A stretch of DNA of 64,000 nucleotides from Oculina patagonica (Eukaryota): positions 47,678,001 to 47,742,000 of the forward strand of contig NC_135758.1 of assembly GCF_052425735.1 (NCBI RefSeq), read 5' to 3'. A program made the translations under genes and the position numbers. This document shows, piece after piece, positions 50,601 through 58,512 of the stretch (within the stretch, counting starts at the first letter, position 1; every line of letters begins with the position of its first letter). Under the pieces are notes generated by a model. That model was not told the origin of the DNA. It did no database searches and saw only the letters and a list, made by a program, of their open reading frames with translations.

Positions 50601-52806
50601 ATCTCTTTATTTTGATACCCCAGGGCATACTGTTTGTATAACTATCGGCTCTTGCTATGACTTTGGACTTTTTGTTTGAACGTGATTTATCAAAGAGGAC
50701 ATGCAATTGAATTACTTTTCGCTGATATTCTGCCCTCGGAAAGATAAGCGATCAAAAAAGTCTTTGTGCCCACATGTGAATAATTCTTATCTTCATTATA
50801 TCTGGTATTTTTTTGCATATTAAAAGTAACTAACCCGAATTTTAATAACACTACACCTGGGTCTAATAATAGTAATCTTTAAAAGATTCAAGTCATTTCA
50901 GAACTCTGTAACTTCCTCAATTTACCCAGTCTCAAATCACCTTACACGATAAAAAAAAACTTATCTGTGGTGATTTTTTACAATACGAGCTGAAAAACGT
51001 TTTTTTTGTCAAAACTAAAACATAGTTTGAAACTACTGTTGTCAATAGGCGTTTATTTTTTAAAATCGAATCGTTTGATTTCAATGAAATATCAAAGAGA
51101 AGAGAAGTGAAAAATTCTTATCTACTAATATATTCAGACCCAGTTCGAATTTCTTCACGAGTCATTGTCTAGCTAGAGACGAAAGTTGGTACTGCAAAAG
51201 TTAAATTTTCTGCTCAGAAAGTGCTTCAATAGGATTTTAATTGCACATAATAAACTCAATGTTTGATGGTCCCAATTTCGGCTCCATGCCTAAAACAATT
51301 GTTTTGTGAAAGAAGAAAGGACCCAGTATCAAAGGCACATGCAGAGAAAGCAAATCAACAGTTTAAAAGAAACCCAAAAGAGATTTGTTTTGTTATTTGC
51401 ACCTGGGGAAATTATAGAACTTAGAAAATAAAACTCTTGTGGCACGCGACCGCATTCTTAACATTGAAAAGCGCGCGTGGACACGGAAAAGTATCTTTGA
51501 ATATGACGTCACGTACTGGTAGAAAGCTATAAGCGAAATATCAGAAAACAACTTAGGAGCTAAACGGATATATTATTTTTCATATTTTTGGAAAGGAATT
51601 AGCAAGGTCGGATGTTTTGTGCAATTATCGAACACGAATTAAGAAAACCGAGTTACCCGCAGCGAAAATAATCCTTGACTGAATTAAATGCAAAAAGACA
51701 ATTATTCTGCTGGCGAGTTAGCTTTAGTTTGCATTTCAAAGACAACACCAATTTGAACGACAATGAATTTGAAGAGTGAAAATTTCTTTTTACAAAGTCG
51801 TTTCTTGACAGCCATGGTCTATTTCGGTCGGATAAATGTTCTTAATTCAAAGCAAGTTAGTTGTTTCAGAAGAGCGGTTAAAGAATTTACACCAAAACCG
51901 CTGAAGTTTCATTCGTTTGAAAATTAAGTCTCTTAAAGTTTCTGCTATTCAACAAAAATTCAACAAGAAAGGTTTGAAAACTTTTGTTGTTGAGCGAAAA
52001 ATTTGTATACGCGCTTTCGGTAAGGCGTAAAATTTAGTAAAATGTGGCGGAATTCCTTACCAATTTAATAACATTTCATTTCGGATAATTTGTGTAATTT
52101 TCGCTGGTGTCTCAAGAAACATAATAACGAATTTTAGCAGATTTGTTTTTCCCGATAAGTGGATCAAAAACATTTGAAGTGACTTTTGAAGCAGTCATAA
52201 TTCAACATGTTTGACTTTAACTCCTGTAAAACGTCTTCAGCTCGTTTTTTCTAAGAAGGAATTAAAAAACAATCTTTCTCACCTTCCCGTGCGTGTAATC
52301 ACCATTTCGGTACCGCAAGCGTAAAATTTCCACCACAGATCGCTCTGTTGCATGGCGACTTGCACTTCACGCTGGACCTCCGTAACTCTCATTTGCGGCG
52401 GACAATATGAAGCAGTGTTCTTTAAACAGTCTAGATTTCTAACCAGGTCACAACAAGCGGCGAATTGCTGCAAAGGATCCAGTGAAGTACTTCTTGCCAA
52501 TCCACGCCTTTTATCGTCTCCGCATTTCTCACTTTGCGTCTGTTCACTGTTCAATATGTTCTGGATTGAGTGGTCTTCGCAAACGTTTCTTGAAAGCGCA
52601 CAGAATTTCGCCTTCTGTGCTAATCGATCATTTTGGCAGCCATTCCACCAATTTCCTTTCTCTTTGTGATCCATTAAGGGCGGATTTAGTTCACTTGTTT
52701 TCCGAGTGTTGGAATTTTCATTAAAATCTTTGGTCAGCAAACTTGCGATCGAGAAAGCTGCAGCCTTCGGCGAGAGGTTGTCATTCTCGTCCCCCTGTAA
52801 GCTCAT
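41607..52806 (-). CDS. T-box transcription factor, Tbx20/Tbx15-like, divergent (5 exons)
   Basis: Exons 52283-52806, 49358-49640, 48086-48226, 47591-47652, 41607-41772 in consistent phase. Motifs LWWKF..GTEMVITRTGRRMFP, KVRLTN, KYQPRIHVV, FPETTFIAVTTYQNEE, KIDHNPFAKGFRD, plus N-terminal eh1 motif LSPKAAAFSIASLL. The last exon is less certain. Confidence 0.92.
42713..51450 (+). promoter_or_regulatory. Cluster of Hairy/E(spl)-HES class C / N-box motifs in T-box introns
   Basis: GTGGCACGCGACACGAGGGT at 42713 and 44355, GGCACGCGACACGAGG at 44737, GTGGCACGCGAC at 51439, GTGGCACGCG at 49923, GTGGCACGAGCC at 43433. Confidence 0.6.
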
Positions 52807-54773: not shown

Positions 54774-55352
54774 GACATATGTATTTAACTATTTCGAAAG
54801 CCTGCGTTCCTATGTAAAGATACAGAAAGATATTATCACAGATCTAAGAACTGCTGCGTTGTCTTTCGAGCCGGGGAAGTAAATTCCCATCCGTATAAAG
54901 ACTTTTACGCCGAAGTTTTTGACTTCGTGCTTCACTGCTTTCTTCACATAACCCTAAACATACAAATTAAAATCGTCTCACGCAGTCCGTAAATCCACAC
55001 ATTTGATTTTCCAAGTTGACCGGGTGGCCCTCTTCCATCCCTGGTACGAGGCCAAGAAAACTGGGTTCCACTAGGCCGACAGGACCTGGAAACGAGATAC
55101 TTTGTGCCAGCCTCGTCCCCAGGCCATACCGCGCTATGCGAGTGAGCGGAGGAGGACTGGAACCGAGCGCGATAGCGCGAGGCCTGGCACAAAATGGCAA
55201 AAAAGTCCCAGTTTAGCGAGAAAAAGTCCCAGATATAGTTCGACGAAAATATACGTTTTTCTGCGAGGAAAAGAAAATATTTCTGGTTCATGAGAAAACT
55301 GCATCCCTTTTGAACATTTGTGGACTATTTTAGATGGCGGAGACAAACTGTA

Positions 55353-55980
55353 ATGCCGTTTTTTCCTGCCTTGCAGAATGGTATTGGTCGTATTAGAGTT
55401 AAGAAAATTATTCTGTTATTTATATTGTTTTCGTTCACTACTCGTCGTGATACATGGGTCTACATGTATCTAGAAGTTCTTTGTGGTAAGCAAATTACGT
55501 TCGCCAGGTACTAGTAACTGTGGTAGTTTTATTTAAACCTAAAAGGCGTCGATCTCAATTTTTATAGACCTAGGGTCGGGATTTTCGACCTTTGTTATTT
55601 ACAAATTTATGTGCGAAAACAAAGAAACAATTCAGCTTACTTGAGAGAAGAGGGCTGATCCCCCGATGCATGTAAGCTTGTCATTGATTACCTGTAAATT
55701 TTTATTTCGCTTTTTAGAGAAAAAAAATCTAACTCTCGTAAACCAAAACTTTATTTGATCTTGTTGTAGCCTGTCTTTTTCTTGTATACTCTGGCTCATT
55801 TCATTAGCAGGAGATGTTAATCCAAATCCTGGGCCATGTTCAGGTAATATATAACAAGTATGCTTCAATCATTTTCGTCAATTCAATGAGCTTATTAAAT
55901 AAAAAATACAGCTGGTCATGCTTATTGCAGATTCCGAGTGTGAATTGATATCATTTCTATTGTGTAGCACCACTAAATAG
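55353..55980 (+). pseudogene. Decayed spliced ORF encoding a 2A/StopGo-like peptide (WLISLAGDVNPNPGP)
   Basis: Putative exons 55353-55485, 55718-55843, 55931-55980 are phase-compatible. There is one in-frame TGA at 55756. The GDVNPNPGP motif is at 55810-55836. Confidence 0.55.
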
Positions 55981-56221
55981 CCAACAGTTCTTGTCAGCCC
56001 AAAAGGTGTGGAAATTTATTTCAATTTCCCTCAAATGCAGAGTTAGCATTTCAGCTGAAGTTTATATATTTTGCTGCCAATTTCGTGTGCACTGCTTTCC
56101 CCTCTAGACAAGGTACATACTGCATCATTGTAGACACAGCTTGTTTAACAAAGTATGATTCTTCTGCTATTCTCTCTGACATTTACTTGCAAAGAAACAC
56201 ATAAACACAATATATATACTA

Positions 56222-56810
56222 ACTGAGCTAAGCAAATACATATGGAAGCTCAAAGAGGAGGACAAGGATTTTAATGTTACCTGGAAAGTTCTCTCTAAGG
56301 CCAAACCGTACACGAACACTTTAAAACGTTGTGACCAGTGTACTACTGAGAAATTGTTTCTAATTTGTTGGCCACATATGGCAACTCTTAATAAGCGGAA
56401 CGAGCTTATTTCTACGTGTAGGCACAGGCGAAAATTTATTTTAAAGTTTAATTTTAAGGTTTAATTTAGAATTTCATACACTAATTTTAGCGCGAGCAAT
56501 TAGTGATGCTTTTCAAGCTCTGATATGACAACTGAGCACGCGCGCGTGCTCTACAGTGTAAAATTTAAATTGTAACGGTTAACAGTGCGATCAAAACAAT
56601 GATGTAGACTGTAACAAACTAGTGTACATGCTGTTTAACTGAAGAGTGGGTCACCTTTATGGTGGCCTACAAAACTGATTTGTAACGGTTAACAGTGCGA
56701 TCAAAACAATGATGTAGACTGTAACAAACTAGTGTACATGCTGTTTAACTGAAGAGTGGGTCACCTTTATGGTGGCCTACAAAACAGATTTGTACTGAAT
56801 GGTAGTCAAC
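56222..56810 (+). mobile_element. Penelope-like retroelement 3' fragment (GIY-YIG C-terminus plus pseudo-LTR with 110-bp tandem duplication)
   Basis: 56222-56464 reads TELSKYIWKLKEEDKDFNVTWKVLSKAKPYTNTLKRCDQCTTEKLFLICWPHMATLNKRNELISTCRHRRKFIL, typical of a PLE endonuclease end. Followed by a direct repeat 56571-56680/56681-56790. Confidence 0.85.
56740..56803 (+). ncRNA. Degenerate minimal type I hammerhead ribozyme (second partial copy at 56630-56684)
   Basis: Stem I gctgttta/tgaatggt, core CTGAAGA, stem II GTGGGTCACC-tttat-GGTGGCCTAC, AAAAC in place of GAAAC, near-palindromic stem III ACAGATTTGT, GTA cleavage triplet. Confidence 0.6.
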
Positions 56811-57985
56811 TGAATTTGAGTTGTTCATTAGAAAAAAGATTATACTGTGTTTATATGTTTATTTACAAATAAATTAAAATATCAAAATATATAATGTTTA
56901 AATATTGTTTGAACCGCTCCAGAAAAGCTGGTTACTGGGGCTTTTAGACCAGCTTCTTTTTAATTTGTGACCCCCATTCTGCATTCTTGATAGCCCAAAA
57001 ATATTTGTATTTTTCCTCACATGGGTACATTGACTTTTTATCCCATTCCTTAAACTACCACCTTTTTAACTCCTACTTGCAGAGATATTAAACTGAGCTT
57101 GACTGACACACACACACACACACACATAAACACAGTACAGTATACAAAAGTATTTACATGTATTCAACTCTTGCAATACATACTAAAACTAGTAGTAATT
57201 GGAATTTAGGGGAGTGCATTTGGTAGGGTGGGGTGATTTGGGGGAGGAGGCAGTGGAAAGTGTTATATTATGTTTTCATATTCTCTTGATATTTGAGGTC
57301 TGTCCATAGAAAATGTATGACATTGCCAGCTGATTAAACCTGATCTGCTTGTACCAACCCATCTTTCTAAAGCATAAGAGAAGAATAAAGCCTTTTGATT
57401 GATTGTGCCAAGCTAAGTGGCTAAAGGTCTTTAATGAATCCAAATAGAATACATTGTATATCTAGAAGATACTCTGGATAATGTTTGTATAGTAACAATA
57501 TAAATATAACATTAACTAACAGTAACATACGACTTTTAAACTGAAATGTAGCCATTCTAAACATTTTGATACCAGTCCATTAGGAACAGTTTTTTGTTTC
57601 CTTACAATCATAATCTTGTCAATGCTTAGTGGTCGAAGGGAATTTGATATGTTATAGAGTCTCACAAGTCTGAAGTTCACAAGAGAGAAGTTGAATCTGT
57701 TAAGCAGCTGAGTTGACACATCACAACTCGGTATCGTCACCTAGGCGAATTGCAGCGTTTGTTTCCCAGAAAACAAACCACTACACAGCTTTCTAATTTT
57801 CTGATAAGTAGCTTTAGTCATATATTTTGCTACTGATACTTCGAATAAATAGTTACAACTTCACTTACCTTGGAGAAAACTGCGAAAAATATTCGAAAAA
57901 AGCGAAGGCAAAGGAACAAAGAAAGCACACACGAAAGCACAGTTGAAAGTACTGAAGGATTATCAGCTTTGAGCCTTTTATCTTA

Positions 57986-58333
57986 TCACCGCTGTTGTTG
58001 TTGTGTCAGCGAGAAGCAAAAATACTCATCATACGACTTTCCACGAACGGCCACTATTCTATCTCCGTTCACCAACAGAGAAATCGATCGATAGAGACAG
58101 CTCCCATCGCCAGTTACAGTTAGTGGAACATATTCTTCTTCAAGCTCTTTAGATGGTACAATTTGTTGCGCATAAAAATCGACATTTAATGTTTCTACCT
58201 TAAATAAAAAATCTCCAATTACTTCACGAGTTTGCTGGCAGACATGGATGAAGGAATCCCAGCCAAATTCTGACGCGTTTTTAAGTTCTTCAAGAAGTTG
58301 ACTGAAGTTCAATCGTTGGACAGCCTCCGCCAT
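57986..58333 (-). pseudogene. Truncated vertnin-like / OTU-like cysteine protease ORF
   Basis: MAEAVQRL...DFYAQQIVP...YVPLTVTGDGSCLYRSISLLVNGD carries the OTU catalytic Cys-loop GDGxCLYRS. It ends before any His-loop and lies inside the TIR element. Confidence 0.65.
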
Positions 58334-58512
58334 ATTGGATTTGCCGTTTATTGCCAGGCGTCCTAGGCGAACTTTCCCGACAAGCTTGACGGGTGACGTC
58401 ACATCCAAATTCGCCGGGGACGACTGGGGACGAGGCTGACTTTGTGCGCTTGTACTCAAAACGTTACCGCTGGCATCTGAAGAACACGAAAACTTTTGAA
58501 AACACCAGAAGG

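Follow-up and report, generated by a model that had tools for sequence, protein, structure and literature searches.

2A-like leaders are documented in RNA viruses, in non-long-terminal-repeat (non-LTR) retrotransposons, and in a few host genes. Here we describe a 2A-like sequence in a 64,000-nucleotide stretch of the genome of the coral Oculina patagonica (assembly GCF_052425735.1, contig NC_135758.1, positions 47,678,001 to 47,742,000), which is referred to as the window and in which positions are counted from the first nucleotide. The codons for the sequence, GDVNPNPGP, lie within a 3.3-kb DNA transposon. A class-A 2A, or StopGo, peptide is defined as (G/H)D(V/I)ExNPG/P, in which the last slash marks the skipping site. 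We favor, with a probability of about 0.7, the reading that the 2A-like codons lie in exon 2 of an intron-containing gene at the 5' terminus of the element, in a transposon family with 15-bp terminal inverted repeats (TIRs) and a 9-bp target-site duplication (TSD), with recoding predicted in active elements. As judged from full-length relatives in another coral, in which it is kept open, the motif is probably a real feature of the main gene of the transposon.

The closest described counterparts are the leaders of APE-type non-LTR retrotransposons (Odon et al. 2013, PMC3708506), in which a 2A-like sequence is situated near the N-terminus of the main open reading frame (ORF) of a transposable element. 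In the Nematostella non-LTR variants (E to S, A or I; PMC3708506), Glu is substituted as it is in the coral leader. The coral host, in contrast, is a TIR element with a 9-bp TSD and without a reverse transcriptase or APE domain, and its leader is split over two exons. The leader behaves most like the APE-type non-LTR N-terminal leaders, but the TIRs and TSDs of its element and the lack of reverse transcriptase place it outside that group.

The 2A of foot-and-mouth disease virus (FMDV; ...LLKLAGDVESNPG/P) shares with the coral peptide the NPG/P end, the Asp-Val pair, the Gly before Asp, and a Leu-rich hydrophobic tract, and the string LAGDV is identical. Unlike viral class-A 2A, the coral motif has Asn in place of the essential Glu (His in relatives) and Pro at the variable position (Arg in relatives). 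It is located 37 residues from the initiator Met rather than between polyprotein domains, and in an intron-containing gene of cellular type rather than in an RNA virus. The iflavirus sequence MDNPNPGP (Luke et al. 2008, PMC2885027) has the same NPNPGP tail near the N-terminus of a polyprotein and was inactive when tested; its Asp is shifted by one residue from the D(V/I)ExNPGP register, and the LAGDV context is missing. N-terminal hydrophobic 2A-like signal sequences in a cellular-type gene are known from sea-urchin NLR proteins (Roulston et al. 2016, PMC4981915), and Halichondria sponge “ankyrin-like” proteins with 2A-like peptides (PMC13405545) have ankyrin repeats, as does the protein encoded downstream in the coral elements. 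Both cases differ from the present one in being treated as host genes. Within O. patagonica itself, the large protein of a Helentron (L028:4476-4751), also a DNA transposon, starts with a hydrophobic leader ending in 2A. That leader differs in comprising 91 aa with a canonical ANDVEMNPGP, in being intronless, and in showing no resemblance beyond NPGP, and Helentrons are rolling-circle elements rather than elements with TIRs and TSDs. Because its sequence is unrelated to the Helentron leader, the leader of the TIR element represents an independent second case in a different class of DNA transposon.

The original prediction reported GDVNPNPGP after a hydrophobic run, and this is borne out in the window, where ...SCILWLISLA directly precedes the motif:

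55810-55836, + strand: GDVNPNPGP codons, with the predicted skipping site between Gly 55831-55833 and Pro 55834-55836

The degenerate DNA pattern for D(V/I)xxNPGP has a single match in the 64-kb window and none in 100 dinucleotide-preserving shuffles. Genome-wide, GD(V/I)xxNPGP is found at 174 sites, versus 0 for a reversed-pattern control. Compared with the class-A definition, the C-terminal NPGP is present in the window (55825-55836) and in two full-length relatives, L032 and L044, that are described below, and the Gly-Asp-(Val/Ile) element is present as GDV at 55810-55818. The upstream hydrophobic, helix-prone tract reads ...CILWLISLAG, with a Kyte-Doolittle maximum of 2.34 over 11 residues computed from sequence. 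The Glu (E14) is missing; Asn takes its place in the window and in the consensus-matching O. patagonica copies, and His in L032 and L044. The reading that this replacement leaves activity uncertain holds. A continuous ORF beyond the motif is also missing from the window copy, in which just 19 residues separate the Gly from TAG 55978-55980, while L032 and L044 encode at least 49 residues after the Gly and reach the exon-4 donor with the frame open.

We also note that the O. patagonica genome is unusually rich in 2A-like motifs, as the 174 sites attest. Other multi-copy DNA variants encode GDIELNPGP, GDIEKNPGP, and GDVEENPGP, and many variants are Glu-less, with S, A, C, H, or N in its place. 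At L030:984-1526 (-) (G000:C5:12161317-12164339), a 180-aa ORF begins with MDVNPNPGP and continues into a retroelement-like N-terminal region; this is an independent NPNPGP variant.

The exon structure was revised by a side-by-side reading of the window and L032, with splice sites picked by eye that are canonical GT-AG in both. The exons are as follows, the slash in the splice sites marking the boundary:

55334-55380 (L032: 5252-5298), + strand: exon 1; ATG, 15 codons, and TG; donor g/gtattg
55770-55843 (L032: 5674-5747), + strand: exon 2; hydrophobic tract and 2A-like motif (...ILWLISLAGDVNPNPGPCS); acceptor ttgttgtag/, donor CAG/gtaat
55931-56005 (L032: 5855-5929), + strand: exon 3; Ser/Asp/Cys-rich; 75 nt in both species; TAG 55978-55980 breaks the window copy
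56041-56112 (L032: 6048-6110), + strand: exon 4 remnant; ends ...CTAFPSRQ, donor AAG/gtacat; 48 nt of most copies are missing

In L032 and L044, exon 1 agrees in length (47 nt), phase, and placement of the ATG, and its donor is ATG/gtaagt. Its terminal TG joins the first C of exon 2 into a Cys codon in the motif frame. Exon 2 measures 74 nt in both species, and no other frame is open in both. The TAG of exon 3 is CAG in copies L002 and L013, and the exon is open in L032 and L044. In exon 4, a Lys-rich ...KKKQKCTA... segment is encoded in most O. patagonica copies and in L032. In L032 and L044, the four GT-AG exons are open over 86 codons, with no stop before the exon-4 donor; the predicted junctions in L044 are 969/1342, 1415/1523, and 1597/1712. 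Residue 37 is the Gly of NPG/P in both species, and the hydrophobic leader ends ...LISLAGDVNPNPG/P. Its tail reads LISLAGDVNPNPGP in O. patagonica versus LTMLAGDVHRNPGP in the full-length relatives (LAGDVHRNPG/P), such that LAGDVxxNPGP is conserved and the interspecies changes are limited to the Glu and variable positions. The lengths of exons 1, 2, and 3 (47, 74, and 75 nt) are identical in the two species, whereas the introns are rich in indels and measure 389 vs 375, 87 vs 107, and 69 vs 155 nt (differences of 14-86 nt). Exons 1-3 are taken as coding mainly because frame and exon length are conserved amid these introns; the splicing of exons 1-4 is a prediction.

The original prediction of a 2A/StopGo-like peptide with a substituted Glu, in a spliced exon of an intron-containing DNA-transposon gene, thus stands, and its exon boundaries do not. 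The donor CAG/GTAAT at 55843/55844 and the acceptor ttgcag/ at 55930/55931 are present and conserved in a related species, and the exon-intron structure is kept in the full-length relatives. The proposed exon 55718-55843, however, contains an in-frame TGA at 55756-55758, which is present in all 19 copies aligned at that position, and the motif frame is open only from 55759; moreover, the A-run at 55720-55727 differs in length among copies by non-multiples of 3. The proposed upstream exon 55353-55485 is phase-compatible on paper only. Indels of +1, +4, -4, and -10 separate the copies, and neither its ATG nor its sequence is kept in the related full-length element. Both exons were accordingly rejected, given the in-frame TGA, the non-3n indels, and the absence of conservation.

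The element that carries these exons spans 55108-58438 (3.3 kb) and is delimited by the following features:

55099-55107: left TSD, ACTTTGTGC, an identical 9-mer lying at 58439-58447
58439-58447: right TSD, ACTTTGTGC, matching the left 9-mer
55108-55122, + strand: left TIR, CAGCCTCGTCCCCAG, 15/15 complementary to 58424-58438 and exact in L032 and L044
58424-58438, - strand: right TIR, complement of 55108-55122
56218-56841: segment missing from most copies, about 620 bp, with a 115-bp tandem duplication and an unrelated repeat in it; joint 56216>56841
57986-58333, - strand: first exon, at the right end, of an OTU-like cysteine-protease gene; DGSCLYR motif and weak Pfam OTU/C65 matches

Homology between copies begins at 55104-55108 and stops at the TIRs. 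Perfect 9-bp TSDs, with differing sequences, flank the window copy and 6 further O. patagonica copies, and also L044 and a relative on C3; no clear TSD was found at L032 and L034. The perfect 15-bp TIRs and 9-bp TSDs therefore identify the host element as a class II TIR cut-and-paste DNA transposon, and the assignment of the motif to a DNA transposon is confirmed by the perfect TSDs of 7 O. patagonica copies and 2 further elements. No ORF or Pfam match for an APE endonuclease or a reverse transcriptase was found in the window element, L032, or L044. Three other origins were considered and rejected. The idea of a cargo gene gives way to data that instead assign the exon to the 5' end of the large gene that the element itself encodes, where internal deletion left it behind. 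A Helentron origin of the leader or of the OTU gene disagrees with the unrelated leader sequence and with the TIRs and TSD. Regarding capture from a retroelement, the other NPNPGP sites (L027/L029 and L030) are different sequences in retroelement-like contexts, with no homology to the exon.

The window copy is internally deleted, non-autonomous, and without an encoded transposase; it keeps the first four exons of the left-end gene and the first exon of the OTU-protease gene. Because TAG 55978-55980 and the loss of 48 nt in exon 4 break the frame, the motif in the window is a fossil and the copy is dead. The original prediction looked for a protein downstream of NPG/P; the window copy has nothing of any length, and same-strand Ank/DUF6589 exons are found in the full-length relatives.

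The family is abundant in O. patagonica. At least 40 genome places match 55700-55950 at 93-100% identity (61 candidates), and the candidate ends number about 150 on the left and 150 on the right, paired ends mostly forming 2.8-kb units. The window copy is longer, at 3.3 kb, because of the extra segment 56218-56841. The 42-nt motif segment is carried by 53 copies and is exact in 36 of them. An additional T in exon 1 shifts the frame of the largest subfamily, another subfamily has a 5-nt insertion in exon 2, and in some copies (L002, L013) no stop or frameshift interrupts exons 1-3. Copies depart from the family majority by 0.6% in exon 2 and by 1.3% in the introns; with divergence this low, the invariance of exon 2 mostly reflects youth. 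No close Ank/DUF6589 homologue was found in the O. patagonica genome, the best match being 38% identical and located in the C3 element, and the O. patagonica family therefore consists of non-autonomous, decaying derivatives. The 7.3-kb L021 was examined as an autonomous element and rejected, its length being explained by a nested Ty1/copia insertion. This insertion (L021:2829-6851, G000:C4:20938500-20946800) has a 1,227-aa open pol frame and is situated in intron 2/exon 3.

The full-length relatives were reached through the OTU gene. The window ORF 57986-58333 is 67% identical to P0004 of ENA assembly ERZ25067872, which occupies the same element end in L032. The identical 15-bp TIR is found in inverted orientation, 12.6 kb apart, around P0004 (L032:5028-17630). 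A second copy in that assembly, L044:698-16025, measures 15.3 kb, is 95-99% identical, and has a perfect 9-bp TSD, GGAGGTACA. Because ERZ25067872 and O. patagonica have other repeat families in common, at 86-87% identity, we infer that it derives from a related coral. The NPGP codons lie ~700 bp inside the left TIR in L032 and L044, matching their placement in the window. The + strand of both elements holds several conserved coding exons, among them one at L044:4314-5117; the last is a 749-aa exon (L044:8001-10250) with ankyrin repeats and the C-terminal part of DUF6589. The - strand encodes a RecQ-type helicase, with DEAD, Helicase_C, RecQ_Zn_bind, and RQC domains, and the OTU protease, both convergent to the Ank/DUF6589 gene. 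Mutator/MULE membership was examined on account of the 9-bp TSD; Pfam searches with the large protein of the full-length relatives returned DUF6589 and Ank only, and no MULE, hAT, P, or other named transposase family. In the AlphaFold model, the DUF6589 C-terminal part has a mean predicted local distance difference test score of 45, and sequence and profile searches of the PDB return ankyrin repeats only. The Ank/DUF6589 protein is the only candidate and is presumed to be the transposase, and the group, characterized by a DUF6589 protein, RecQ, with or without OTU, and a 9-bp TSD, matches no named Pfam transposase family.

More distant relatives contain the same genes in part. An 11.2-kb, intact-looking relative in O. 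patagonica (C3:9403607-9414844, L042/L043) has TIRs CTGCCTCCTCCTCAG / CTGCCTCGTACCCAG and a perfect 9-bp TSD CCCCAGTCT; its Ank/DUF6589 frame is open for 728 codons, RecQ ORFs are present, and an OTU gene was not seen. This element might cross-mobilise the non-autonomous family. A second copy of it is present on C1358. An exhaustive protein search retrieved P0064 (NCBI GCA_015852565.1), an intronless 1,243-aa DUF6589 relative with a convergent RecQ next to it. The N-terminus of P0064 is acidic and Ser/Asp-rich, then basic, and ~250 residues precede the first block shared with the coral exons. At L045 (GCA_015852565.1, CM027634.1:7977237-8000968), P0064 and the convergent RecQ lie inside the span of a large immunoglobulin-domain gene. 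The DUF6589 and RecQ two-gene module of the coral elements is thereby found in a distant genome, and no clear TIRs were found at this locus.

Exons 1-4 are predicted to be part of the DUF6589 mRNA. The leader exons share the strand of the large gene and occupy its 5' end, no other substantial ORF is present on that strand, and the segment following the leader is Lys-rich and resembles a nuclear localisation signal. Several observations count against this reading or against the predicted recoding, or are neutral. Exons 1-3 evolve near neutrality, with a ratio of non-synonymous to synonymous polymorphism (pN/pS) of about 0.8, and exon nucleotide identity is not above intron identity. Among the O. 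patagonica copies, those in which the motif segment is not exact change its D, N, P, and G freely and with no pattern. No autonomous copy of the motif-bearing subfamily was found in the O. patagonica assembly. Public Logan contigs, from libraries of uncertain type, are collinear with 55099-58447, and GT..AG ends are found at none of 15 among their 18 joints; these 15 are internal-deletion variants, for example 55166>58380 and 56216>56841, a result that is neutral with respect to splicing. From exon 4, in-frame splicing to the DUF6589 exons can be modelled in all three phases, for which reason exon chaining in silico does not discriminate. The first conserved exon downstream holds its own in-frame ATG (MKEKSEDM...), and the more distant members L034, the C3 element, and P0064 have no NPGP leader. 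Regarding activity, saturation mutagenesis of P2A and F2A found E14 intolerant, with E14H in P2A as the sole exception (bioRxiv 10.64898/2026.09.24.754024), the Nematostella non-LTR 2A-like sequences are all altered at key motif residues, mostly Glu, and two that were tested were inactive in vitro (PMC3708506), and the iflavirus MDNPNPGP was inactive as well (PMC2885027). We also note that a D(V/I)xxNPGP leader is present in 0 of 209 proteins fetched, a result of little weight given that nearly all of them are single-ORF fragments, and that a 71-aa ORF at L044:3043-3258, a candidate intermediate exon, has no detectable similarity to P0064.

Several of these observations would be explained if exons 1-4 lay outside the DUF6589 gene, as a separate short gene, as an upstream ORF or 5' leader, or as a captured 2A-bearing 5' end (e.g., of a non-LTR or Penelope-like element) near the TIR. 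The ~2.5 kb without detectable conserved coding sequence between exon 4 and the first conserved exon, the splice chains in every phase, the ATG of that exon, and the leaderless distant relatives are all compatible with such an arrangement, as are the 174 GD(V/I)xxNPGP sites of the genome, which include other NPNPGP variants at retroelement-like N-termini. It is opposed by the agreement of strand and order with the large gene, by the conservation of position, phase, and exon lengths in two species, and by the absence from the region of any similarity to a reverse transcriptase or an endonuclease. The order of composition, Ser/Asp-rich and then basic, also parallels the N-terminus of the intronless P0064. 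We consider this explanation unlikely.

The leader may alternatively be kept for a role other than skipping, as a signal or membrane anchor, cleaved or not, or as a “leucine stall-helix” attenuator, with the NPGP tail an inactive or weak remnant. A ~15-residue hydrophobic core (Kyte-Doolittle 2.3-2.4 over 11 residues) is indeed present at the very N-terminus, and the E to N or H replacement speaks against efficient StopGo. N-terminal 2A-like sequences can also act as signal sequences (PMC4981915), and eukaryotic 2A-like peptides often lower abundance instead of skipping cleanly (PMC13405545). The downstream protein, however, looks nuclear, with its Lys-rich KKKQK and its candidacy as the transposase, and is ill-suited to secretion; the strongest conservation falls exactly in LAGDV..NPGP, which a signal peptide does not need. 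This role is judged rather improbable. A chance motif in non-coding transposon DNA, with “exons” as an artefact of fitted splice sites, is very improbable: the splice sites were selected visually, the pN/pS of about 0.8 is near neutrality, and no transcripts were found among the public contigs of uncertain library type, but neither the shuffles nor the reversed-pattern control reproduces the pattern, the match reaches LAGDV as in FMDV 2A, exon lengths are kept exactly amid indel-rich introns, and the 86 open codons of two full-length copies compare with a chance of ~0.016 for random codons by our own estimate.

In the favored reading, the ATG of exon 1 would serve as the translation start in active elements. 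The four open exons would encode a leader of 37 hydrophobic residues up to LAGDVHRNPG/P, followed by Ser/Asp-rich and Lys-rich segments, the latter resembling a nuclear localisation signal, and would be followed on the same strand by the exons of the Ank/DUF6589 protein (~1,240 aa in the intronless relative). The tail of the nascent leader, LAGDV..NPG, is similar to FMDV 2A and would stall the ribosome at Gly-Pro. The ribosome would then either free the leader and restart at Pro (StopGo) or abort, giving less output. Both outcomes would part the leader from the nuclear protein and set the dose of the protein.

Any recoding activity is a prediction, and its likelihood differs between the two forms of the motif. 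The N form is probably inactive in standard systems, because of the published tests of Glu substitutions, among which an earlier mutagenesis tolerated only E to Q at this position (PMC3708506), and of MDNPNPGP. The H form of the full-length elements, by comparison with those tests, carries the one substitution known as tolerated. 2A-like N-terminal leaders are established in other transposable elements (PMC3708506). Since many eukaryotic 2A-like peptides cut protein abundance rather than skip cleanly (PMC13405545), attenuation of transposase synthesis appears as plausible as clean StopGo. A bolder proposal, which we regard as doubtful, is that the 37-residue leader is the working N-terminus of the Ank/DUF6589 transposase in an undescribed group of large TIR elements (9-bp TSD, RecQ, OTU), and that its Glu-less motif (DVHRNPGP/DVNPNPGP) drives StopGo or programmed drop-off on cnidarian ribosomes, setting the transposase dose by nascent-peptide recoding.

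Further observations concern the element and its surroundings. The segment 56218-56841 contains the 115-bp tandem duplication at 56570-56684 / 56680-56794. A 94-codon open frame at 56180-56461 (+), with the motif ...KRCDQC...EKL...LNKRNELISTCRH..., has no Pfam match. Parts of the segment occur beyond the transposon family (e.g., C6:22298665, C13:14683592), which marks it as an independent repeat that one subfamily either captured or hosts as a nested insertion. In four public runs, contigs link ~55134-55173 straight to ~58361-58411; because these contigs join the near-left to the near-right end, short derivatives resembling miniature inverted-repeat transposable elements, with little beyond the two ends, exist in the sampled organisms. 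The O. patagonica annotated “hypothetical proteins” P0006 and P0007 open with the first exon of the OTU gene of element copies, TIR-derived residues included, before passing into unrelated sequence; each represents either an exonised transposon end or an artefact of gene modelling. The ORF 52279-52806 (-), whose translation closes with ...LWWKFYACGTEMVITRTGR, resembles the first part of the Pfam T-box domain (E 6e-05), in a match that falls short of the curated cut-off. It is probably a T-box gene exon, and the transposon copy is situated ~2.3 kb upstream of it. For annotation, the locus is thus a dead repeat copy upstream of a T-box gene and not a host gene.

Among the papers returned by full-text literature searches, none has a title or abstract describing a natural 2A-like sequence in a DNA-transposon gene, and a recent 4,218-peptide survey mentions neither DNA transposons nor transposases. 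With the leader of the TIR element, mobile elements associated with 2A come to include a third mechanistic class, the Helentrons having preceded it; the motif is situated in a predicted spliced exon at the 5' side of the element, and its frame is kept in two coral species. The uncharacterised DUF6589 family is placed in a transposon context by the element, with its DUF6589, RecQ, and OTU genes and 9-bp TSD. The natural pair of E to H and E to N replacements in the same context would provide a clean test of Glu-less cnidarian motifs on cnidarian ribosomes. If the bolder proposal is true, many “inactive” Glu-less 2A-like motifs of cnidarian mobile elements would be functional in their own hosts.

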